Shown here piece by piece: positions 3,770 through 50,760 of a stretch of 64,000 nt of DNA (the first letter of the stretch is position 1; every line of letters begins with the position of its first letter). The notes under the pieces are model-generated. The model saw only the letters and a list, made by a program, of their open reading frames with translations. It was not told the DNA's origin and did no database searches. The stretch lies in sequence record MF360958.1; one strand, 5' to 3'. Both the position numbers and the translations under genes were made by a program.

Positions 3770-6700
3770 TTAATCTTTGCCTGACATTATATGACCATAT
3801 TTTGGATAACTTCTTTGAGAGTTAATACCGATATATGGTTCTAAAATTGTAAATTGTGGCATTTGATTTTCAATATCAATTGGATATGCCTTTACATGGT
3901 ATTTATCTATATCAAAATATTTTCTTCCTGTACTAAATATACTACGTTTAACATCTTCTAATGTTCTATTATTATTGTTAATAGTTTTGTAATGTATAAA
4001 TTCTACAAAGCTATGTTCTAATTTATCATTATTCATACGTGACGCATATAGAGCCAATAGCTTACCATTTTCATTATTAACAGGTTTTAACTTGTCAGTA
4101 ATTGTTTCTAATTCTATACTATGTTCATCAGGATGAATATGACTTTTAACATTTATAGCATCTTTTTCATCACATTTAAATAAAAATACTTTCCCTGAAT
4201 AATTATATAAAACAAATTCTCTATATTCATGTACAGCATGTTCATGATCTGGATTATTAATATCATTAAGATAATTAGGAAGTATCATATTTGAATCATA
4301 ACCACCCTGAACATTAATCCCATAATCATCATTTTCGTTCCCACCATAACGGTCAAATGCTGAATATCTATCTGTAATAACAACTTTATCTTTATAATTA
4401 AGACTCTTATGAAATATTATTTTATTTGGTCTTAATTCGTAATGATACTGAATATTGTTTTCTTCATCATCCATAACCCACTCATCGTCATTCACAAGCA
4501 CCATTACTTGTTCTTTATGAACATTTAGATTAATTGGATATTCAGTTTCTGTTCCATCTGAATTAAATGTAACAGTTTCAAAAATATTTAAAGGAATACT
4601 AGTTTCATACCCACGGGGCACTAATTTTAAATTATTTTTATATGTAACACACATTGATTCTTTGAAGTTTAAAGATGATTTTTCTTCTGGTACACCTCTA
4701 TGTGAAGTTTCTATAAACGGTGTATTATGACGAATATTATTTGCAGAACTATTATTAAAATCACTATTAGATTCTACTAATGTTGGCTCGATATTACTTT
4801 CTTCCAGATCATCAATATAATCTTGTTCAATAATTAGTTCTCCATTGTCATTTAATTTTATAGGGGAAGTATTACTATTAATTACAAACGGAAGTTCATT
4901 TATTTCATCAATATTATGATATGGTATACCGACACCACGAATTTCAGATGATTTTTGAATGAGAGTTCGGTAATCATCTTTAGAACGAACTTTGACCACA
5001 TCACCTTTATAAAGTTTATTAACAAATTCCAAATTAGTTTTACCATTTTTTGTGTTTATTTTATAATAACGTTCATTGATATATATATCATTAATGAAAA
5101 CTGATATATTATCTTTATTATGACTATTATCAATTGAAATATTTTTCTTTGTTTTTGAATTAACAAATATTGTTTTTGTTTCATTAACAATATTTTCAAG
5201 TAAATCACTATGATGTTGTATAATAATTCGATCTATTTCTGATAATGTTTGTTTAGGATTATCGTGATTGTATAAACTATAATTTGTTAGTTTTTCTAAT
5301 GGTTTATCCGAATTATCAATATTATTTTTGATTTTTAATAATTGTTCTAAACTAAATGTTGGTAGTAATGAAATACGATCAAAAACAATAGTAGATGATT
5401 TTTGGTTAACAGTCGATTTCCAATTTTTTAAATTATCCTGATTAACAGACATATAACCACGGGTATTTTTATAATTATTCAATATATTAATATGATCGAG
5501 GTTATTGGAACGAACTGTTATATTATTATAGTAATTTATAGGTTCTTGAACAATATTATTGAATATCAAAGTATTACCTATAATTTGATAAGAATCTTTA
5601 GGTAGTTTTTGATCTTCAATATAAACCTCAATTGATTCAAGATCATGAATTTTTTGCAATTCGAACTCGTTTTGAGGACGTTCTATATCACCCGCGTTAT
5701 AATGAATAATTGCTTCATTTTTTGAAATCATACGGGGGTATATAGCTATTTCATCAAAACAAACAATATCATTAGTATTATTATTTCCAAACATTACTTC
5801 TATATCACTATTAAGGACTTCTAAAAATTCAATAGATGTTTCACTAGCTAAACGATTATTGTTATATAATCTAATATCTCCATTACTATAACCAATACTA
5901 ATATAATTTGCTTTATTGTTAAATATAAGATTTAAGTTTATTTCTATATTTTCATTTAAACTGTTTACAAATATAACTTTATATTGCCAGATATTATCTG
6001 CATCAACATCTATAACAAATTCTATAGTATTAACTTTATTATTGTTATTAAATTTAATTAGTACAAAACTATTTCTTCCTTCAGAAAGATTATTTGGAGA
6101 TGTAAACCACCATTCAATATTAAATGAATTTGTTTCAAAATTTTTCAATGTGTTAGTATAACTATAATTGGAAGTTCCGCTTAAACAAATATTATTAGTA
6201 TACGATATTCCTTCATTTTGTTCTATATTAATAATTTCTGGATTATCGTTTAATATAAAATCATTTCCATATAATCCTTGTATATTCTTATTATCTTGAA
6301 TATTATTCATAGACCAATATTCATATGGATTACTGTTCATAATTTTATGATAATAATATTCGTTTTTACGATATCTTATTTTTTCTGTAACATATTCTTG
6401 AAGAATAATTTGATCTTTATCTTCAGTAAGATATGGTGGTTTATCAAAATCAGTTACAAATAAACCAATATTTTCAGGCTCACGTGTATGAGTTCTGTTA
6501 ATAGTACGTAATTTAGTATGAAATGGTTTTGCCTCATTAACATAATCAATAATTTGTTGTTCTCTATTTTGACGATATACATTACTCTTTGTAAGAGTAT
6601 TGGTTTTTTGATTTATACTAATATATGTTGATGGATATACCCAATCATTATTCGGTTGTTCAACAAAAATTTGCTCAACTAATCTAAAGAACAATTCAAA

Positions 6701-12700: not shown

Positions 12701-15193
12701 ACGTGTTGTTTTACCTAAATTTATATTGCCAATAATTTTATCAAAGACATCACGCACATTTTGCTTATTAATATGCTTATTTTTCATTATATCTTCAGTA
12801 TTTAAAACAATTAGATTTTTAAATGACGAATATGCTCTCATGGAATTATAAATGCTGTCTACAATATCACGAGAGTTGTTATCATTAATAAACATTAAAG
12901 GAACCATAGAATTATCATGCTTTAGTACCTTATTGCCTTTAGAACGATCTTTTACTGTATCTCTGAAATTATTTTCACTTAATGAACTTCCTTTAATATA
13001 GTGTTGATTAAAGATTATTGATCTAAAATGATTAAATATTTCTGTGAATGCAAATTGCTCAACATTTTCGTTCATAGGATTATTAGACAGAGAATCCTGA
13101 ATCATTTGAATTGCTTCATTAGGATAATGTTCAATTCTTTCAAATGTTTCATATTTAACTTCTAAATAATCACCGCTTGATAAATTATCATTTAGTGGAT
13201 AAATTTTTAAATCTTCAAAATAAAAATCTTCATCTTTAATTAATCGATCACCATTTAATTCTACTTCAAAATTATCATTTTTAGGAATAAATTCAAATTC
13301 TAAATGAGGCCGTCCTGAATTAATATCCTCATCATTAAATACTTTTTTCTGTAGAAATGTTGTTAAATTACTGGTTTTTTCTTCCCAAATATCTTTATAT
13401 AATTCATCTTCAATAATATCATCTTCAATAATAATATAACCTGTTTTTGAACCTATAGTATAAGTATAAATATTATTTTCTGATTTATTTTTATCATATG
13501 AAAATTCAATATTTCTTATATTATTTGAATTATCGCCATTAACTTCATCGATAATTTTTTTACCATTACTATCTTTAATAGATATTGAATTATATTTTCC
13601 TGACCATCCTCTCGGGGTTGTAGTTGTATCTGAAAAATCAAATTTATATTGTATATTTTCTTTTAATATTAAGTTAGGTAACTTTTCATCATTAATATAA
13701 ATAGTTGGTTCATCATTTTCATCTTTATGAATAGTAAATAAATAAATATTATCAGATGTTATTTTTTCAGGATTTAACTTTTTATAAAAATGATTATTTA
13801 TTGTATGAGATACACCTCCTGCCTCATAAGAATATTGTTCATCCATAAAGTTTTCAAAAACAATATCAGAAGATTCTTGGAATGTTTTATATAATATATT
13901 CAAATCTAAATATTCATCATAAATTCCATCTTGTATGTCCGTTTTATAAGAAAATATTTTATTTCCTTTAAAATCACTATTCGGATAGCGATAAGGATCA
14001 TTGAGAAGTGTAGCTTTGCTTGAATCATTGTTATCATACAAATTAAATAGTGGTGCTTGTGTTGAATGGATTTTTTGTTGACATTGAATCCAACTATGAG
14101 TTTGTTCATCCCACTTAAATTCATCAGCTTTATAATTACCATCAAGAATTGTTACTTTATAACCATCATTTACTTTATCATATTCTACAAAATTATTACC
14201 ATCATAACGATAGATTTTAGGATTCCCTTCTTGGATTGCTAAGTCATTTACTTGAACAATCACTCCATCTGTTGCTATAGAAAGATTATTAGAAAATAAA
14301 GTTACATATTCATAAGGTGTATTTGAATAATTATAAAGTTCTATGTTTTTATCAAAACATATAATAGGACGTTTAGCTTGGCGTTCTCTACTTGCACTAA
14401 AACGTTCTTGTCCTACTTGTTGGTTCACCACATCTCTATGATACCAACAATTATTACGGCTCCATGGATTATCATCTAGACTTCCTCTTTCCATTGTAAT
14501 GTATTCAGCAGGAAAACGATCAATTAAATCTTGTATTTCATTATCTGCTATTTGAAGTCGATCAATACGTTTAGGTTTATTATTTTCTAAGGAAAATTCT
14601 ATAAGATTTATAAAACGTCCCACACCTTCAACAATGTATTCCTTATCATCATTAAGAATAATATGATGGCCACTACTAAGCATTATGTACTGATTAGATT
14701 CAGTAATCGTTGCTTGATATTGTGTTTTTCCAATAATATCTTCAGGTTGAGCATTAACATGAAAGGCCATAATTCCTTCAGGATACCAATAATAATTATT
14801 AAAGTTTATAAACATATCCATGTCTATAGGAGGGGCATAAGAGTAACTTTTTGAATTAAAAATACGATTATGATCAGATACATATGACCCTTTTGACTCT
14901 AAATTATTAAGTAAATCTTCATAAAACGTAGCAGATTTAATTTCACCACTATCAACATCTTTTATAACAAGTGTTTGTTCGAGTTGATAATCTTCACGAA
15001 TCTTACGATCTTCTTCTGAATAATAATCTTTAAATGGTTGAAACAATCCTCCGGGTGTTCGACCTATGTAAAATGGTACATCTTCGGAATTCTTCGATGT
15101 AAACAACGTTTCAGTTGTTGAATCCATGAAGTTACGGATTTTATTTGTACGAAATTGTCTAGGGAGAAATTGTTTAACATTTTTATTTGTCAT
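3770..15193 (-). CDS. Giant baseplate wedge-like structural protein (3807 aa) with inserted LamG-like and CBM5/12-like domains
   Basis: Size, position and N-terminal FLPRQFRT..YIGR..YQLE..DMFINFNNYYW pattern typical of the very large jumbo-phage baseplate protein; RBS AAGGA upstream. Confidence 0.7.
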   Translation of the reverse strand: MTNKNVKQFLPRQFRTNKIRNFMDSTTETLFTSKNSEDVPFYIGRTPGGLFQPFKDYYSEEDRKIREDYQLEQTLVIKDVDSGEIKSATFYEDLLNNLESKGSYVSDHNRIFNSKSYSYAPPIDMDMFINFNNYYWYPEGIMAFHVNAQPEDIIGKTQYQATITESNQYIMLSSGHHIILNDDKEYIVEGVGRFINLIEFSLENNKPKRIDRLQIADNEIQDLIDRFPAEYITMERGSLDDNPWSRNNCWYHRDVVNQQVGQERFSASRERQAKRPIICFDKNIELYNYSNTPYEYVTLFSNNLSIATDGVIVQVNDLAIQEGNPKIYRYDGNNFVEYDKVNDGYKVTILDGNYKADEFKWDEQTHSWIQCQQKIHSTQAPLFNLYDNNDSSKATLLNDPYRYPNSDFKGNKIFSYKTDIQDGIYDEYLDLNILYKTFQESSDIVFENFMDEQYSYEAGGVSHTINNHFYKKLNPEKITSDNIYLFTIHKDENDEPTIYINDEKLPNLILKENIQYKFDFSDTTTTPRGWSGKYNSISIKDSNGKKIIDEVNGDNSNNIRNIEFSYDKNKSENNIYTYTIGSKTGYIIIEDDIIEDELYKDIWEEKTSNLTTFLQKKVFNDEDINSGRPHLEFEFIPKNDNFEVELNGDRLIKDEDFYFEDLKIYPLNDNLSSGDYLEVKYETFERIEHYPNEAIQMIQDSLSNNPMNENVEQFAFTEIFNHFRSIIFNQHYIKGSSLSENNFRDTVKDRSKGNKVLKHDNSMVPLMFINDNNSRDIVDSIYNSMRAYSSFKNLIVLNTEDIMKNKHINKQNVRDVFDKIIGNINLGKTTRQTFSQTYMFGTYRKFINLEIDNNGKLNEFADTKPINNELYIFTNEGIKIRDIDYEISIDDIVGETKIIPKSFDISDIDEIRYYEDMDPSFCPSTPAKFGLEKPFKPEIIEDDSFKNKQHFIIGHDGSKTPVYSNYNQIEENDLDPRDLILLEFEKRIYNGIDKDFIETEKKYFDYNYLKEGYFRKSSYDLEQFKNTEFNIFHIWSYNNNVNYSKNTQYDEDNPWTYNYSLHGSKLPGHWKGIYEYLYDTHRPDIRPWEMLGFSIKPAWWDNEYGSDYSSNNVQLWNDLEQGIIRQGERSNAENMRYMSVDNIYRRIGLKELIPVKNDGTLKDPVELGLFNNYPTYYNASQPWEYGDLGPVEQSWKRQSDYFYAKQIVHYLLKPLDYINKAWNTFETYSKNSTFFPNVINYEINNQKNNNYVPGVTQWIHDYIRENDESVEDIMIDAFNGINVVLGHKLGGYIDTQNLRIISESYNPRSGNVNSSLPEDDINVFVHESKDIREEVYSGVIIERVAPNRKDLNFIKGELYQKGDIVYISNDDSYYKNVKSLYDYPEWNEKTTYVKNRAVIYNNTIWNCIVDHSPQNIPPTDSNYWELRGFIDSEWALMFDAPDPKYTVFKVYGYDPYGSQFKTIPAKTSGKKKTITSITNESEAIDAKQWEPLTNYEQGEYRTLPNGKLIRALEKHKSGQSFDNEYWTIVENIPYTNIAKTTVGIEGDDSILNVVPYGTTFRNEKDVSEFIIAYGRYLESRGWLFDERDKNRNIYKNWELSVKEFIQWAYENKNEGSVISLSPSSMNIRFKSDHGVPSISRNYNKNKITLLDNRSRIITPSENTFNRENDVFQITPQRPIYYARVNVREYEHAMVINNRTIFSDVLYNPLYGIRKERLQVNARKTKDWNGKLEANGYIILDNRLLPNFESSITDLKTINDMDSISTQYIFNTLKYHNIGFENRSYLENINMDEKSQIQFYSGFIRQKGTSEAFQRILRSNQIEADENMGINEEWAFKEGEFGSLINNQTTEYVLNRMDYISSPQNIILRYNGYGEDITPSYNDILIESSNRDKWLKFPSRFSQYEKIWTEDRLSNLKVMPTAGYVNYYDVDYTAFSLSELNTKIINSGKELQPKQYAWIARDGYSGYGFNVYISQEDKNITVKDIEIYGEEDISSMILRLNNVEENSIYSLYNLGYKYTFTFKRVDENDNLFIALPYDNSTYITLNEDLTKDDLNNSTFIIWKPLRINKFYNTIYNDIQDTIDRFIQKNNIDVFDGLKLFIDSVNSNVSYKQSILESSALEYWTFDNKEDSTFIGHINDISLTTNSDYAFENPNNGLILGDKSLKGGTNYDPSNNNWPQSFWADLGNHLNLSNKEKSIQFWINNGEFSYRYNQSVSTTIASIVGVDLDTSNTYTVQLMVDPPIVGSEWSYKIVYMVNDIIDQELDAIIESGYNQIVLNYKNINGKVHIESFINGLNFEELVSSSVINVDNNVLWYTVIGDSAEPESDMPYIDHVSVYDYALDLKDIQEQYDIALETIKNENKRNRWAVYYFNSGKWNLDYKEQDVIDCNLMKDITVYESNTNNLVTHLNIFDPIKGFYPSSLINYIDYFTEYDPANYHLNDSDNNSYWTDSKVGTLWLDTSKLRYIEYENFDIETRNNLWGSLFPGSEVHVYEWIKTKVLPENIEDQSVILDTTKYTIGSEYDVLTDNYIEYYYYWVKNNINVPETSNRNVNAVDIANSIKYPENNGTGYIQFLRNDIFSIIDINNDLVDNDTVIQINYRLGYNEQSRNHSQWKLLSRNSKEIPEYLFNNMVDSLLGYTEPSDQNPEGLKVPNPNLAPNNRYGNDRVKRQSWFYNAQNARKIFYEVINNVLKYINLWDTDIFWERRVDNVKRDTELYSLVDWYKEDFDPDTIVRNKIKDRNFLNSIPLEDGEHIAVNETAEQNTYINEKTTVIYRYIKEYNTYEKVFQTRSALSFNPIIYKRELTAQEAIEMRRILNVIFNYILIGENKDTIFELFFRLVEQIFVEQPNNDWVYPSTYISINQKTNTLTKSNVYRQNREQQIIDYVNEAKPFHTKLRTINRTHTREPENIGLFVTDFDKPPYLTEDKDQIILQEYVTEKIRYRKNEYYYHKIMNSNPYEYWSMNNIQDNKNIQGLYGNDFILNDNPEIINIEQNEGISYTNNICLSGTSNYSYTNTLKNFETNSFNIEWWFTSPNNLSEGRNSFVLIKFNNNNKVNTIEFVIDVDADNIWQYKVIFVNSLNENIEINLNLIFNNKANYISIGYSNGDIRLYNNNRLASETSIEFLEVLNSDIEVMFGNNNTNDIVCFDEIAIYPRMISKNEAIIHYNAGDIERPQNEFELQKIHDLESIEVYIEDQKLPKDSYQIIGNTLIFNNIVQEPINYYNNITVRSNNLDHINILNNYKNTRGYMSVNQDNLKNWKSTVNQKSSTIVFDRISLLPTFSLEQLLKIKNNIDNSDKPLEKLTNYSLYNHDNPKQTLSEIDRIIIQHHSDLLENIVNETKTIFVNSKTKKNISIDNSHNKDNISVFINDIYINERYYKINTKNGKTNLEFVNKLYKGDVVKVRSKDDYRTLIQKSSEIRGVGIPYHNIDEINELPFVINSNTSPIKLNDNGELIIEQDYIDDLEESNIEPTLVESNSDFNNSSANNIRHNTPFIETSHRGVPEEKSSLNFKESMCVTYKNNLKLVPRGYETSIPLNIFETVTFNSDGTETEYPINLNVHKEQVMVLVNDDEWVMDDEENNIQYHYELRPNKIIFHKSLNYKDKVVITDRYSAFDRYGGNENDDYGINVQGGYDSNMILPNYLNDINNPDHEHAVHEYREFVLYNYSGKVFLFKCDEKDAINVKSHIHPDEHSIELETITDKLKPVNNENGKLLALYASRMNNDKLEHSFVEFIHYKTINNNNRTLEDVKRSIFSTGRKYFDIDKYHVKAYPIDIENQMPQFTILEPYIGINSQRSYPKYGHIMSGKD

Positions 15194-15270
15194 TACTCAT
15201 TATATCCTTTTTATCTGTTAAAGTCTTAATTATTTATGGTTTAAATCTTCAGAGTCAATTTAAAAATGTA

Positions 15271-16317
15271 TTAAGTTGATCCGCCACAGTATCCTTCAAC
15301 ACAAATATCAATATTTGCTGAATCGCTATTATTAGAATCATACTTTATAACATACTGCTGTGATAACTTAACCCTAAAGTTTTCCATCGTTGTTGTCAAT
15401 TCATTAGCTGTATTAACATTATCATAATCACCATTTGTTTCATCAGCAATTTGTTTAAATACATTTTCATCAAAATTAGAACCAAAAGCAATTAAAAATA
15501 CTGGTATGGATGCATTTTTTGCTGAATCGATAGCATCTTGTAATGTATTATTTGAACTCCCATCGTTACCATCAGTTATTACCATTAACGCATTTTGCCG
15601 ACTGCTGGATTTTATTTCATTCACAGCTGTAATAATTGAATCATATAATGCGGTTGAACTTCCTACATCCGATGGGTTATTAATTGCATCTTTTAGATCA
15701 GATGCATTACTAGTTAAACTTTGATCAAGAGAAGCATCACCTCCGAAATTAATTATTGCTGCTTTATCAGAACTATTTAATTTATCTATTAGATTCGATG
15801 CACCTGTATTCATATCGGATTGGTAATCTGAAAATGATCCAGATCTATCTAGAGATATACCAATATCAACAAATTTATTTAAATCACCACTTGTTGAAAA
15901 TGTATAATTAGATATTTCAGAACCATTCTCAGTAACACCACAAATATCTTCACTTGTTATATCAGTAACAGACTCCCCCGTGTCGGGATCAATTACATCA
16001 AAATAAACTTCTGTTGTAGAGCCACTATTAATTTTCTCAATTTGTCTAATTTTGACGCCTTCTCCAACTACAGATATTGTTTTTGATATTGATGTAGAAT
16101 CAACAGTTGCTGTTAATGTTAATTGTTCATTTAATATGTCTGTTGAAACAGTAAGATTGCCTTGCGAATCCACTGTTCCTATACTATTACTAGTAGACCA
16201 TGAATCTACATTGATATCATCGCTTATTGTACCATCACCTTCTCGTTTTAAAACATTATATTGATGGCTGCTTCCTGCACAAATTCTTTTTGGACCATCT
16301 AAAATTAAATTACTATA
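15271..16317 (-). repeat. vWA module copy 2 (C-terminal); direct repeat of 18220..19272
   Basis: Near-identical DNA to copy 1 at a 2955-bp offset. Confidence 0.95.
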
Positions 16318-46257: not shown

Positions 46258-46542
46258 TTTTAACCCTTATATTAATTTTAGAATGCCAATAGATTTTTAT
46301 TGTTTTAGTTTATACAATATTATTTAAATCCTAATTAAATTTTTGATATATTTATCTTATATTAAAATATTACATAAATTATGATAATAAATTATGATAA
46401 TTAAACATCAACTAAAAGTAATACGAATATTATGGTATAATTCTCAATCTATATTTGATCACTAAAAAAGTATATAATTATAATATCAAATAACGCTTCA
46501 TAAGAAATTTTCATAATTCATTAGGTTTGAAATTTAGATATA

Positions 46543-46572
46543 AAAAATCCTCCATGATCATGGAGGATTTTT
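46543..46572. terminator. Perfect 30-bp palindrome AAAAATCCTCCATGATCATGGAGGATTTTT; bidirectional intrinsic terminator
   Basis: Exact self-complement, 13 nt past the stop of 46586..47881, with T5 tracts on both strands. Confidence 0.85.
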
Positions 46573-46585
46573 ATAACACACTTTA

Positions 46586-47881
46586 TTACTCATTAACGTA
46601 GTCATTATAATACAATGTAGTACCAAATGGCGCTTCAACTTTTTGACTAATTGCATGTTCATCATGAATAAGGAAAATGGTATCACAGTACTCTGGATCG
46701 CCCCATGAACCATTAGGCATACCGTCAGTAAGCATCACAAAAGTATCAGGGCAAATATCATTGTTTTTCATGAATTCCCAACATGCCATAAAGTCAGTAC
46801 CACCACCACCTTGTGGCGCGTATTCAAGAAGCTCATCAATGTTATCTTGGTCAAATTCTTTATAACCATAGACTTTAGTATCAAACGTAAAGATACCAAT
46901 TTTAAACGATGTGAAACAGTTACCAATGAAATAAATCTCTGAAAGAAAATCAGTAAGCTGATCATTACTCATCGAACCACTCGCGTCCACGGCAACTGTA
47001 AATTCATAATGGTCATCCACGACAATACCGGGGATAATGATCCCAGCAGATAGGAATCGCTTATTAGGACGTTTCCAGCTATAATCAGTTTTGACCTTGG
47101 ATTTAGCATTCTCTCGAATGAAATCACGCCAGTTCATTACGGGTTCTGTGATTTCTTTGATCATTCGTTGAATTTCAGCCGGTACACTACCCGCTGATTT
47201 AGAACCTGACGCAATTTCAGAAGCTTGCATCATTGCAGATTGCATTTCATTATCGAGCTTTGCCATCTCGCTTTCAGTCATGATGATAGTATCACCATCT
47301 TGCCCATTTGAACCATCTTGTGATTGTTGAACATCGAAGTGGTCATCGAAGTTGCTTTGACCATCATCACCTTGGTCTTGACCGCCTTGGCTTTGGTTTT
47401 GTTTTTGTTCGTGAAGAAGATCATAGATTTCTTCAGTGGACTTGTCTGCGAGATTTTCATCATACAGCCCACCAACGCCGGGGAAACGACCTACACCGTC
47501 ACGAACAAGAATATGGTTGATAACGTAATCGGCAGACTTCCAATAATCATCATTGTCTTTCTTACCTTTACGTGTGAGATGCCGTAGAGCACAATGCATT
47601 ACTTCGTGAGCAATTGCGAAAACGATTTCGTCATCATCCAGAGCATTAATAAACCATGGATTATAATAGAGTGTACGACCGTCTACCATAATGGAACGAA
47701 CCGTTTGGTCCTCACAGTCTACCGCCTTCAGGCGAAGATTCAGAGCAATGGTTCCATAGAAAGGTTCTCGTTGCATCATACGGAGCCGATTAATCACAAG
47801 ACGCTGATGCATTTCTTTCTCATCAATGTCTGCTTCATAATCTACCGTTTTGTATTGTTCTCCGGGTTGGTAATTTGACAT
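46586..47881 (-). CDS. vWA-associated metallopeptidase (DUF2201-like: HExxH domain + acidic linker + vWA)
   Basis: AHEVMHCALRH, Q/G/D linker, VDASGSM, FDTKV, GGGTDF, LTDG. Confidence 0.88.
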   Translation of the reverse strand: MSNYQPGEQYKTVDYEADIDEKEMHQRLVINRLRMMQREPFYGTIALNLRLKAVDCEDQTVRSIMVDGRTLYYNPWFINALDDDEIVFAIAHEVMHCALRHLTRKGKKDNDDYWKSADYVINHILVRDGVGRFPGVGGLYDENLADKSTEEIYDLLHEQKQNQSQGGQDQGDDGQSNFDDHFDVQQSQDGSNGQDGDTIIMTESEMAKLDNEMQSAMMQASEIASGSKSAGSVPAEIQRMIKEITEPVMNWRDFIRENAKSKVKTDYSWKRPNKRFLSAGIIIPGIVVDDHYEFTVAVDASGSMSNDQLTDFLSEIYFIGNCFTSFKIGIFTFDTKVYGYKEFDQDNIDELLEYAPQGGGGTDFMACWEFMKNNDICPDTFVMLTDGMPNGSWGDPEYCDTIFLIHDEHAISQKVEAPFGTTLYYNDYVNE

Positions 47882-47931
47882 AATTTACTCCTGTTTAAAT
47901 AGTTTATATTATCGAGAGATAATAACATTCA

Positions 47932-48210
47932 TTAGCTCACTCGACAATAGACTTGTTCTTCAGAGACACAGTAATATTCATTACCATCATCATCTTTATG
48001 AATCATAGGCGAAATTGCATTAATGATAAGCGTATCACCTGCTTTTGTATAATCAACAAGCTCGCCTGCGCTTACAACTACAGCTTTACAGTATGTATCT
48101 TTACTATTGCTAATCTCAATAATAGTAGATAGTTGTTCATCATCTTCAATTCTTCGAGCAATAACATTTTCATTAATAGCACGAATTTTTTCAAAATTTT
48201 GTTCTGACAT
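47932..48210 (-). CDS. groES: Co-chaperonin GroES-like protein
   Basis: IRAINENVIARR..IIEI..KAVVVSAG..AGDTL..GNEYYCVSEEQVY follows the Cpn10 pattern; 92 aa. Confidence 0.78.
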   Translation of the reverse strand: MSEQNFEKIRAINENVIARRIEDDEQLSTIIEISNSKDTYCKAVVVSAGELVDYTKAGDTLIINAISPMIHKDDDGNEYYCVSEEQVYCRVS

Positions 48211-48279
48211 TATTAGAGTATCCTATATTTTTTATTTAAAATACATCCCTGTACTGATTAATGGTTTATTCTATTTATT

Positions 48280-49137
48280 TTATTCCACTTTACTTTCTGT
48301 TTGATTGCTGTAAAAATGATCCTCATCAGCATCACGAACATAATCATTGTCTTGATCGAAAACAATATGTTCGTAGAGTTCCGTAATAGTTTCCAGCATA
48401 AATTCTGCTAGTTTTTCACCATTATTCCCCGGTTCTCTGATGATATACGGTGCAATATCAGGATAGCGCACACATACATCAAATTTAGTAAAGATATGCT
48501 GCTTATTAATAAGCCCATAAAGCTGTGCATAATAAAATGCAAGACACTTATAGATATCTACAATATCTTGTTTTTTTCCAAAATCGTGAATATCTGAAAA
48601 ATCATTCTCAAGACGTTCAGTAATGAATTGTACTCGTTCGCTAAATGATCCATTTTTCATAAGGTCTTTAACTTGATCACGATAGCTTGTCCGAGACAGG
48701 AAACTAAGAGTATGACGAATCACCTTAATAGCTTTGAGAGAAATGCTTTGTTTAGCATAATCCTCAACGGGACAACTATCATGATTATGATAATTAAAAG
48801 AATGGTTATAGAATGTTTCCATAATACAATTCTGTGTTTCTTCAACATCCTTATTTTCAGCCCAAACTACCTCACCGTTAATGATTTTAATGAATTGAAG
48901 ATCAATATCATTTTCAGTAATTGTTCGAGATTTTTTAGCCAGATGTTTCTTGAGTGTGTTTTTGATCTTCATCAATTCACGCTTATCTGGCCCTCCATCA
49001 GAATTCAGAGGATTATCAATAAGGTTTACAAAATAATCGCGGTCGCGACTATTTGACGAACCAAATTGAAAAATTCGTGATTTATATGTATCTGTGATGT
49101 TAATTTCATCATACATTTCTTGTGTGGTAGCAACCAT
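48280..49137 (-). CDS. Putative nucleotidyltransferase (FGS-x4-DxD) with helical C-terminal domain; start revised to ATG 49137
   Basis: IFQFGSSNSRDRDYFV; third acidic candidate in DIDLQF; RBS GGAG before MVATTQ. Confidence 0.55.
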   Translation of the reverse strand: MVATTQEMYDEINITDTYKSRIFQFGSSNSRDRDYFVNLIDNPLNSDGGPDKRELMKIKNTLKKHLAKKSRTITENDIDLQFIKIINGEVVWAENKDVEETQNCIMETFYNHSFNYHNHDSCPVEDYAKQSISLKAIKVIRHTLSFLSRTSYRDQVKDLMKNGSFSERVQFITERLENDFSDIHDFGKKQDIVDIYKCLAFYYAQLYGLINKQHIFTKFDVCVRYPDIAPYIIREPGNNGEKLAEFMLETITELYEHIVFDQDNDYVRDADEDHFYSNQTESKVE

Positions 49138-49220
49138 AATCAGACTCCATAATTGTTTGATTTTTTGAAAAACAAGAAAGGGTATTGTAACCCTTTCTTG
49201 TTGAAAATGCAACTGAGCTA

Positions 49221-50579
49221 TTAAAGCTCAGTCAGGATGTTATCGTAACGGTCTACTAGTTCATCCATAGCATCACACTCACCGATCTTGAGATTGTACT
49301 GCTTCAGAGCAATACTAGCGCCCATGATGATGAAGTCTTCCTGAAAATCCAGATTTTCCATGAGGAAATTCAGGTAGTTATCACCGTACTTATTCATGGT
49401 GTCGTGAAGCTCACCAGTAGAGTTACCATCCTTCTGCTTGGAGCGAAGTGTTTGCTCTTTCTCGTGCATCCGGTGGCAGAGATTCACGATTAGCGCGTAG
49501 TTCGCTGACGCTTTGAGACTTTCAAGATCATGAGTTTTAACACGACCTTCCAGAATATCCATTGGATCAGGAAGCTGACCAAGAAGCTCGAAGCTTGCCA
49601 TGAATTCAGAACCTACACCTACGCCAACCATAGAATATACTTGGTTTTGGAGACGCTTGTAATGTTCCTGCTTCACATTACCTTTTTCGTCAGTAAGCGC
49701 TTTAAGCACATTACTTACGAATTCCCAAGAACGCGGTGTTGCGAATGCATACTCATGACGGTTTTTAGGATTGAATGTATTCAGGTTCCCGGAATGTGCC
49801 TTGAGATAACCAACCACTAGATGGTGAATATGGTTATCAATTGCCCACTGTTCCCAAGACTCGTAATGAGGTACAAGGGTAAAGTGTGAGAAGCGGTTTC
49901 GCAGTGGCGTAGGCATCGAGAAATTCACTGAATTATCTTCTGAACGGTTACCTGCCGCAATAAGTGACACGCTTTCAGGAAGCTTATATTCACCTACTTT
50001 ACGATCAAGCACAAGCTGTAGTGCTGCCGCTTGTACTGCTGGCGGTGCAGAACTGATTTCATCAAGGAAGATCACAGCATTACCCGCATTCACCATGTAC
50101 ATCAGCTTGGATTTTTCAACATCAGTGAAATCAACATTTTCGCCATTATCCATACGTTCCAGCTTATCCATAATTGTAGCAAGCTGGCGATCTGTTGGTT
50201 CAGTTGCGCTTGGCTCGATCATTTCAGGCTGACCTACCTCATCAAGATGCGAGCGCAGATAATCAAGCTCAGACATAGAAGGAGGAAGCTCAGACGGAGC
50301 ACCAGTTTCCATACGCTTCGAATCAGGATTGAAGTAAGGAATACCGGACAGATCTGTTGGATCTTTCAGCAGGAGACGAATATCAATAACGATACGCTTT
50401 AGCTCCCTACCGATCTGCCGAGCGAGGTCGCTTTTACCAACACCGGGCTGACCCCACATCATAATCGGTGGGAGTACTAGTCCTTGGCTTGGCGCTTCAT
50501 GAATATTGAATCGTAGCTCATCGAGCATGTCAGATGGTGTTAGCTCTGGATGTGTTGCAGTTTGATCGTTCTTAGACAT
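49221..50579 (-). CDS. MoxR-family AAA+ ATPase
   Basis: Walker A GQPGVGKS, Walker B IFLDEI, AAGNR, PLRNRF, ATPRSW; RBS AGGAG. Confidence 0.92.
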   Translation of the reverse strand: MSKNDQTATHPELTPSDMLDELRFNIHEAPSQGLVLPPIMMWGQPGVGKSDLARQIGRELKRIVIDIRLLLKDPTDLSGIPYFNPDSKRMETGAPSELPPSMSELDYLRSHLDEVGQPEMIEPSATEPTDRQLATIMDKLERMDNGENVDFTDVEKSKLMYMVNAGNAVIFLDEISSAPPAVQAAALQLVLDRKVGEYKLPESVSLIAAGNRSEDNSVNFSMPTPLRNRFSHFTLVPHYESWEQWAIDNHIHHLVVGYLKAHSGNLNTFNPKNRHEYAFATPRSWEFVSNVLKALTDEKGNVKQEHYKRLQNQVYSMVGVGVGSEFMASFELLGQLPDPMDILEGRVKTHDLESLKASANYALIVNLCHRMHEKEQTLRSKQKDGNSTGELHDTMNKYGDNYLNFLMENLDFQEDFIIMGASIALKQYNLKIGECDAMDELVDRYDNILTEL

Positions 50580-50732
50580 ATTAAGTTCTCCTGTTGATAG
50601 TTTCGAATTTAGTAGTTTAAAACAACGTTCCAGCTAATGCAATAGGTGAAACAACTTTTTAGAAGACATTAGATGAAAATATCTATATGTCTACGTTTCG
50701 AGGTAGGTTCTCTCCCCGAATCGCTGAAGCCT

Positions 50733-50760
50733 ATTATATATATTTGTAAGCTAATGTCAA
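50733..50760 (-). promoter_or_regulatory. Consensus sigma70 hexamers TTGACA-N16-TATAAT driving the MoxR cluster
   Basis: Exact consensus hexamers; the -35 overlaps the TGA stop of the upstream ORF. Confidence 0.85.

Follow-up and report, generated by a model that had tools for sequence, protein, structure and literature searches.

The locus in Salicola phage SCTP-2

The 440-kb genome of Salicola phage SCTP-2, a jumbo phage from a solar saltern, contains a run of four co-directional genes (172 to 169) on the minus strand, annotated as hypothetical, which bring together a MoxR-type AAA+ ATPase, a predicted nucleotidyltransferase (NTase), a Cpn10-fold protein and a zincin linked to a von Willebrand factor A (vWA) domain. 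The genes were analysed in a window of 64,000 nucleotides (nt) of the sequence record MF360958.1, and the coordinates given for SCTP-2 are those of the window (record coordinate minus 124000) unless the record is named. In the direction of transcription, gp172 (49221-50579, minus strand) is a MoxR/midasin-type AAA+ ATPase of 452 amino acids (aa), gp171 (48280-49137, minus strand) is a 285-aa protein with a predicted Pol-beta-fold NTase domain and a C-terminal HEPN-like helical domain, gp170 (47932-48210, minus strand) is a divergent second Cpn10/GroES-fold protein of 92 aa, and gp169 (46586-47881, minus strand) is a 431-aa fusion of a zincin domain (DUF2201_N) and a vWA domain (DUF2201) connected by an acidic Q/G/D-rich linker. 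The genes for gp172 and gp169 lie 1.3 kb apart, with the NTase and Cpn10 genes between them. Related loci and metagenomic contigs compared with SCTP-2 are designated by L-numbers (L005, L012, L028, etc.).

The intergenic gaps measure 83 nt (gp172/gp171), 69 nt (gp171/gp170) and 50 nt (gp170/gp169). From the gaps of 8-69 bp given in the initial annotation of the locus, the larger value stands, whereas the 8-bp gap arose because the NTase reading frame had been begun at the TTG codon 49212. This 310-aa open reading frame (ORF) was rejected, as it would read through a hairpin located in the 83-nt gap. The ATG codon 49137 is almost certainly the true start of gp171, being preceded by a GGAG motif 7 nt upstream, identical to the GenBank start and aligned with the N-termini of the orthologues.

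The MoxR-type ATPase and its zincin-vWA partner

The affiliation of gp172 with the MoxR-type AAA+ ATPases, already proposed in the initial annotation, was borne out by profile searches. The protein matches PHROG 1297 (3e-94) and Pfam AAA_5 (29.5 bits, above the cut-off of 22), falls just short of the MoxR model AAA_3 (25.0 bits for a cut-off of 27), and a profile built from gp172 and its relatives finds midasin as its best match among solved structures (E-value 1e-9). The single AAA+ module displays the Walker A motif GQPGVGKS, the Walker B motif FLDE and an AAGNR motif, all three invariant in the family, as well as an RNRF motif, so that Walker A, Walker B, sensor and Arg finger are all represented; the gene is single-copy in the SCTP-2 genome. 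An acidic insertion of about 60 residues before Walker B had also been noticed, correctly so: it comprises about 62 aa (residues ~106-170; 50070..50264, minus strand) directly before the Walker B strand, and is mildly acidic, with 14 D/E versus 6 K/R. The insertion occurs in SCTP-2, L005, L012 and L014, but not in L017, L023, L033 or most other homologues. Since L017 bears the four-gene block, the insertion and the layout of four genes do not go hand in hand, and the insertion is best described as a lineage-variable loop and no hallmark of this locus.

The assignment of gp169 as a vWA-metallopeptidase proved equally sound. Both halves of the protein exceed the Pfam cut-offs, with 147.7 bits (6.6e-43; cut-off 23.2) for DUF2201_N and 50.1 bits (3.7e-13; cut-off 26.4) for the DUF2201 vWA domain, and its profile matches the minigluzincin MJ1213 (6.5e-5) and M48 peptidases. 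The predicted zinc-binding and catalytic motif HEVMH is encoded at 47594..47608 (minus strand) and the metal ion-dependent adhesion site (MIDAS) motif DASGS of the vWA domain at 46973..46987 (minus strand). Among 10 homologues, H92, H96 and H101 as well as the MIDAS residues D299, S301, S303, T362 and D386 are invariant, and the catalytic-motif residue E93 is conserved except in L012, where it is replaced by V. This L012 protein (4735-6012), with HVVMH in place of HExxH and an intact MIDAS, may correspond to a catalytically dead copy or to a sequencing error. Similarly, the DUF2201 gene of L015 (1346-2687) is called as two overlapping ORFs of 304 and 154 aa, which may reflect a frameshift or an assembly error. 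Like gp172, gp169 is encoded by a single-copy gene in the SCTP-2 genome.

The association of a MoxR/midasin-clade AAA+ ring with a MIDAS-bearing vWA partner relates gp172 and gp169 to the couples reviewed by Kaur et al. (2020, PMC7159879), namely RavA-ViaA, CoxD-CoxE, midasin and a pair for tail assembly in the archaeal virus ATV, with which they would share, by analogy, the presumed capture of a peptide and its ATP-driven release. They differ from these couples by the zincin domain carried by the vWA protein and by the lineage-specific acidic insert of the ATPase.

Distribution of the pair in phages

A MoxR AAA+/metallopeptidase-vWA pair of jumbo phages has already been published by Iyer et al. 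(2021, Viruses 13:63, PMC7824862). The SCTP-2 genes belong to the same two families, share with the published pair the fusion of an N-terminal HExxH domain to a vWA domain and the co-directional arrangement, and similarly occur in a T4-related jumbo phage. They differ in being 1.3 kb apart, with the NTase and Cpn10 genes in between, and neither this split arrangement nor an inter-gene hairpin or an early-type promoter is described in that publication. The core pair is thus already known and, as far as the sequences compared indicate, its splitting by other genes is a variant confined to one lineage.

The ATPase was found in 714 phage records, distributed among N4-like, rV5-like and jumbo phages. 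A survey of the pair covered 80 IMG/VR loci, 75 of which offer room for a downstream gene. In all 75, a DUF2201 gene follows the ATPase gene on the same strand, at a distance of at most 400 nt in 67 cases, which confirms the MoxR-vWA/HExxH partnership recognized in the initial annotation; the two genes also adjoin in the Yersinia phage fHe-Yen9-04 and the Xanthomonas phage XbC2. No NTase or Cpn10 gene was detected between the pair in any of the 75 loci with hidden Markov models of both families; among the loci compared, the synteny of the four genes is restricted to the SCTP-2-like clade.

In eight loci, the two genes are separated by 0.8-4.8 kb, and six of these eight spacers hold genes for GIY-YIG, DUF7487, Vsr-like or small ATPase proteins. 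In the N4-like phage SBP1, an HNH gene is located between the pair. Foreign genes of the homing-endonuclease type (HNH, GIY-YIG, DUF7487/Vsr-like) have thus landed repeatedly in the ATPase/DUF2201 spacer. Occupants of the spacer were located at L004 5035-5535, L079 7207-7881, L021 7231-8217, L024 7404-9395 and L065 8105-9598. In addition, the DUF2201 family PHROG 1314 bears the label 'HNH endonuclease'; this appears to be an annotation error and may originate from the repeated acquisition of such genes by the spacer. Two candidates resembling the SCTP-2 insert were rejected: in L033, the 237-aa product of a gene that separates the pair proved unrelated to gp171 (hhalign probability 0.3), and weak matches to gp170 came from 86-aa ORFs located after DUF2201 in L027, L028 and L059 (E-value 0.045), which give no Pfam Cpn10 signal and were taken as noise.

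As to the function of the pair, Iyer et al. proposed a role in the assembly and processing of virions (PMC7824862). Extended to SCTP-2, this proposal would make the locus a chaperone island for morphogenesis, in which the pair assists both of these steps, the Cpn10-fold protein is an added folding helper for structural proteins and the NTase is a passenger. The tail-assembly pair of ATV offers a precedent for such a role, and in XbC2 the pair is closely preceded by genes for 'structural proteins'. However, the SCTP-2 block lies amid genes for replication and transcription (DNA polymerase, exonuclease, primase-helicase and GreA), and the pair adjoins a helicase in phage SBP1. Taking into account the promoter described below, we consider this explanation distinctly unlikely for SCTP-2.

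A probable single insertion in the SCTP-2-like clade

The full order ATPase-NTase-Cpn10-DUF2201 was found in SCTP-2 and in the metagenomic contigs L005, L012, L014, L017, L104 and L105, and partial blocks occur in L015/L016, L018, L006 and L013. Between SCTP-2 and L005, the proteins corresponding to gp172, gp171, gp170 and gp169 share 71, 55, 40 and 73% identity, respectively. In an ATPase tree of 71 sequences, the seven block-bearing sequences form one side of a branch with a Shimodaira-Hasegawa-like approximate likelihood ratio (SH-aLRT) support of 99, and the presence of the block requires a single change; this distribution fits a single old insertion in the ancestor of the SCTP-2-like clade. 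The 214-kb contig L028 agrees with the clade in the genes on the upstream side (exonuclease, small genes, ATPase) but carries DUF2201 directly after the ATPase, and it looks like the pre-insertion state. L005 is the closest metagenomic relative of SCTP-2 and possesses an Acb1-family gene (14891-15415; Acb1 acts against the cyclic-oligonucleotide-based antiphage signaling system, CBASS) near its primase-helicase region.

The reading which we favour, and which we hold to be reasonably probable, is that of a composite locus: a known and self-sufficient MoxR/zincin-vWA pair was split once by a cassette of NTase and Cpn10 genes, and the inserted genes kept jobs of their own. The pair is called self-sufficient because nearly all other phages use it without the two middle genes, with adjacent genes in 67 of the 75 loci and the insert in none.

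The same figures bear against an integrated machine of four components, in which the NTase and the Cpn10-fold protein would act as third and fourth subunits, the former marking or priming a target and the latter capping or regulating the ATPase or the protease. Such a machine appears unlikely to us. It is favoured by several features of the clade, which weigh against the composite locus. The order of the block has been kept strictly over a deep divergence, in seven full and three distinct partial blocks, with insert proteins down to 22-29% identity, and no lineage with only one of the two insert genes was encountered among the loci compared. The genes downstream of gp169 turn over while the order of the block stays the same. 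The NTase and Cpn10 genes overlap or are separated by only 2-5 nt in L005, L014, L017 and L018 (21-37 nt in L015 and L012). On the other hand, all block contigs that reach past the block on a given side share the same synteny, with the exonuclease upstream and GreA downstream, so that a kept order is not special to the block in this clade.

MoxR-vWA systems are also known to take on third components. The ternary conflict systems of bacteria (PMC7159879) similarly consist of a MoxR-vWA core and additional linked genes, e.g., for VMAP, iSTAND, FtsH or beta-propeller proteins. In SCTP-2, the additional genes encode an NTase and a Cpn10-fold protein, in a lytic phage, and none of these third components was detected by Pfam or PADLOC among the four proteins or their neighbours.

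The base composition of the genes distinguishes the pair from the insert, in favour of an insertion. The GC content at third codon positions (GC3) of the ATPase and DUF2201 genes reaches 0.30-0.43, versus 0.16-0.26 in the neighbouring genes, in SCTP-2, L005, L012, L014 and L017, the only exception among the neighbours being the NTase gene of L012 (0.36). The overall GC content of the two genes is higher too, whereas gp171 and gp170 have the GC3 of the genome background. Recent horizontal transfer was rejected as a cause, since the same contrast occurs in all relatives; the contrast is read as a maintained difference in codon usage, with no signature of recent transfer.

The nucleotidyltransferase gp171 and its family

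The initial annotation had called gp171 an NTase, and the identification now relies on a predicted fold and is no longer a guess. No match was found for gp171 in Pfam, PHROGs, NCBIfam or PADLOC, and searches of the PDB (with the single sequence and with a profile) and of the ESM Atlas returned nothing usable. A word-index search recovered one relative, whereas an exhaustive profile search recovered 391 cluster representatives, 102 of which were aligned to build an AlphaFold2 (AF2) model with a predicted local distance difference test (pLDDT) score of 96.2. Structural alignment of the model by VIA-align gave AAD(9) (Z 7.6), ANT(3'')(9) (Z 7.3), HalB (Z 7.0) and MNT (Z 5.5), and also DrrA and GlnE, and all top matches of Foldseek are NTases (E-value 0.011). 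In addition, residues 129-270 match HEPN-like substrate-binding domains of NTases. The scores of both aligners are moderate and, at that level, the model indicates a two-domain NTase of the Pol-beta fold.

In this respect, gp171 resembles AAD(9), ANT(3'')(9), ANT(4'), HalB (from the Hailong system), the MNT antitoxins and RlaP, which similarly consist of an N-terminal minimal NTase with GS and DxD motifs and, as predicted for gp171, a C-terminal four-helix HEPN-like domain for the binding of a substrate or a nucleoside triphosphate. It differs from all of them in that its sequence matches no Pfam, PHROG or solved family, and Z-scores of 7-7.6 denote only a moderate likeness. The residues F25-G26-S27 and D32-R33-D34 are found in every row of the block subfamily that covers the region; of the other 92 rows in the alignment, 95-96% possess them. 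Candidates for the third catalytic carboxylate are D79, which is invariant in the block subfamily but gives way to N in some 70% of the family at large, and E100, which is 93% conserved.

Outside the block clade, the family was identified in Bacillus phage G (gp208), Lak megaphages, contigs of huge phages (500-640 kb) and giant viruses of the Klosneuvirus type. Some members are fused to a PNKP phosphatase domain or to an NYN RNase, one is part of a cluster that includes RlaP and an Rnl1 RNA ligase, and others adjoin an RNB exoribonuclease or a metallophosphoesterase. These fusions and neighbours link the family to the repair of RNA ends, a genomic link which is shared with RlaP, and the family to which gp171 belongs, devoid of any Pfam or PHROG model, is probably a new one of NTases for RNA repair in large viruses. 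Additional members were located at L007 3375-4085, L008 3486-4196 and L019 5001-5816, and in L100, L101, L103 and L106. Outside the block clade, none of the family members of phage G, the Lak phages or the giant viruses adjoins a MoxR, DUF2201 or Cpn10 gene.

These family contexts point to RNA ends and away from proteins, which argues against a machine of four components with a protein-marking NTase. They also bear on the suggestion of the initial annotation that the four proteins form a quality-control or counter-defence machine which tags, unfolds and cleaves its targets: the four domains and the MoxR-vWA pair are confirmed, but no direct support was found for the combined machine and the contexts of the NTase family speak against protein tagging. 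In favour of a four-component machine, three enzymes that AMPylate proteins, DrrA, MNT and GlnE, are among the structural relatives of gp171, and the block NTases possess residue changes of their own. They have retained D79, the motifs GS and DxD and the majority of the basic residues, but they lack N81, D99, Q114, R130, Q202 and E214, which are 86-96% conserved elsewhere. The loss of these near-invariant residues suggests that the substrate of the block subfamily may have changed, which fits a new role and sits less easily with an insert that kept its former job.

The Cpn10-fold protein gp170

Taken alone, gp170 remains slightly below the gathering score of Pfam Cpn10 (19.1 versus 21.1 bits) and matches PHROG 3188 at 1.5e-8, but its orthologues in L012, L014 and L018 pass the Pfam threshold with 24.5-27.3 bits. 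The AF2 model reaches a pLDDT of 72 only, and Foldseek relates it to the Cpn10 of T. thermophilus, T4 gp31 and GroES, with E-values of 1e-4 to 1e-3 and template modeling (TM) scores of 0.6-0.67. The three orthologues and the fold match uphold the GroES-type assignment of the initial annotation. Residues 24-30 of gp170, at the position of the mobile loop, are of low confidence or disordered, and a hydrophobic S-x-I-I loop motif is kept in gp170 and its orthologues.

A second Cpn10 of SCTP-2, more canonical (30.5 bits) and with a loop of the GGIV type, is encoded outside the window (record coordinates 275598-275876; L010 1498-1812); its gene is located directly upstream of a clamp-loader-like gene. 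No GroEL was found in the SCTP-2 genome, and therefore the GroEL of the host would be the predicted partner of gp170. With GroES and T4 gp31, gp170 shares the fold, the size and the position of the flexible loop, as well as the absence of a phage GroEL, which also characterizes T4; it differs by its score below the Pfam cut-off, by the S-x-I-I motif in place of a GGIV-type loop and by the occurrence of another copy in its phage.

Phage-encoded Cpn10s, T4 gp31 for instance, act in capsid folding, and the fold match of gp170 to gp31 is in favour of the morphogenesis island. The divergence of gp170 beside a more canonical copy, which would free it for a new role, instead favours the four-component machine and weighs against an insert devoted to its former function. 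In the same sense, the fold matches of gp170 include Cpn10-type proteins in a complex with a Clp protease (7ekq). Against this, a heptameric Cpn10 would have to associate with a hexameric AAA+ ring, and we know of no such pairing.

Transcription signals of the block

A perfect promoter had been noticed upstream of the block, and its predicted sigma-70-type elements, TTGACA and TATAAT with a 16-nt spacing, are indeed present at 50760-50733 (50733..50760, minus strand), where they overlap the stop codon of gp173. The 64-kb window contains two perfect sites of this type, for 0.28 expected. Upstream of the ATPase gene of the relatives, the site is perfect in L005 and matches 11/12 positions in L017 and 10/12 in L012. 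A conserved and perfect host sigma-70 promoter would be the mark of an early gene in T4-like phages, which argues against the morphogenesis island and, along with the replication-gene neighbourhood, leans towards an early role for the pair. The 5' leader (50580..50726, minus strand; about 147 nt) is moderately structured (minimum free energy -32 kcal/mol, z -2.75), and a scan of the region with Rfam gave nothing above threshold.

A hairpin resembling a terminator (49171..49202, minus strand), made of a 13-bp stem followed by UUUUUC, lies directly 3' of the ATPase stop codon in the 83-nt gap, with a folding energy of -20.5 kcal/mol (z -6.2). A hairpin of unrelated sequence occurs at the same position in the four block-bearing relatives examined (L005, L012, L014 and L017), and also in the insert-free pairs of L028, L002 and L003 (fHe-Yen9-04 and XbC2), and L023. 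The coordinates of the relatives are 7919-8000 in L005, 7084-7192 in L028, 5309-5362 in L002 and 5234-5284 in L003. Such conservation argues for at least partial termination after the ATPase gene. The hairpin is probably an attenuator or a 3' stabiliser which would provide more ATPase than downstream products, and an attenuator-like element between the two genes of the pair implies an unequal dosage of their products. In SCTP-2 and L005, the loop of the hairpin reads TACAAT, with a hexamer of the TTG type 17 nt upstream, and a promoter may overlap the hairpin.

Behind gp169, a predicted intrinsic terminator (46537..46572, minus strand) consists of a GC-containing palindromic stem and a T-run (-17.2 kcal/mol, z -4.2), in agreement with the terminator given by the initial annotation, and terminator-like hairpins with T-runs similarly follow the DUF2201 gene in L005, L012, L014 and L017. 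Both hairpins of SCTP-2 were recovered by folding, and neither by a scan for consensus terminators, which missed the post-ATPase hairpin because only four T were counted after the stem. Between the terminator of gp169 and the GreA-like gp168 extends a very AT-rich, gene-free spacer of 328 nt (46258-46585), at the place of which L005 contains one additional gene and L014 two.

The initial annotation had viewed the block as one unit running from promoter to terminator. The signals at both ends stand, but a plain operon with a single promoter does not, owing to the hairpin of the 83-nt gap, a feature newly described here. By parting the ATPase gene from the other three, the hairpin also opposes a machine of four components. 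No clear promoter was found upstream of gp171 in SCTP-2, and the insert depends therefore on read-through from the ATPase promoter, which fits less well with an independent cassette.

Proposed function and significance of the locus

In its preferred form as a composite locus, the block may be envisaged as follows. By analogy with the characterised MoxR-vWA couples (PMC7159879), the MIDAS of the vWA domain of gp169 would hold a client protein by an acidic peptide, hexameric gp172 would remodel or release the client, and the fused HExxH domain of gp169 could cut it. A two-gene cassette of NTase and Cpn10 would have landed once in the spacer of the pair, 3' of the conserved hairpin, in the ancestor of the SCTP-2-like clade. 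Transcription presumably starts from the strong host-type (early) promoter, is probably attenuated after the ATPase gene and would end behind gp169, so that the insert (gp171-gp170) would be co-expressed with gp169. Most likely, gp171 adds nucleotides to a nucleic-acid end and gp170 acts as a co-chaperonin for the host GroEL, and neither is likely to belong to the MoxR machine as a subunit.

A more far-reaching alternative, which we hold to be doubtful, assumes that, in the SCTP-2-like clade, a neofunctionalised NTase of the RNA-repair type and a specialised protein of the Cpn10 fold became obligate subunits of the pair, for an early remodelling and proteolysis directed, e.g., against a host complex or a defence protein. 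If the additional genes are partners of this kind, the locus would show how the MoxR system of a phage acquires accessory subunits in the manner of the bacterial conflict systems; if they are not, it still documents a hot spot of insertion. Three handles are offered by the locus, namely a conserved host-type (early) promoter, a conserved attenuator-like hairpin between the genes of the pair and a clade in which additional genes have been kept for long. Moreover, the locus reveals an unannotated family of NTases, probably linked to RNA repair, that is common to megaphages and giant viruses.

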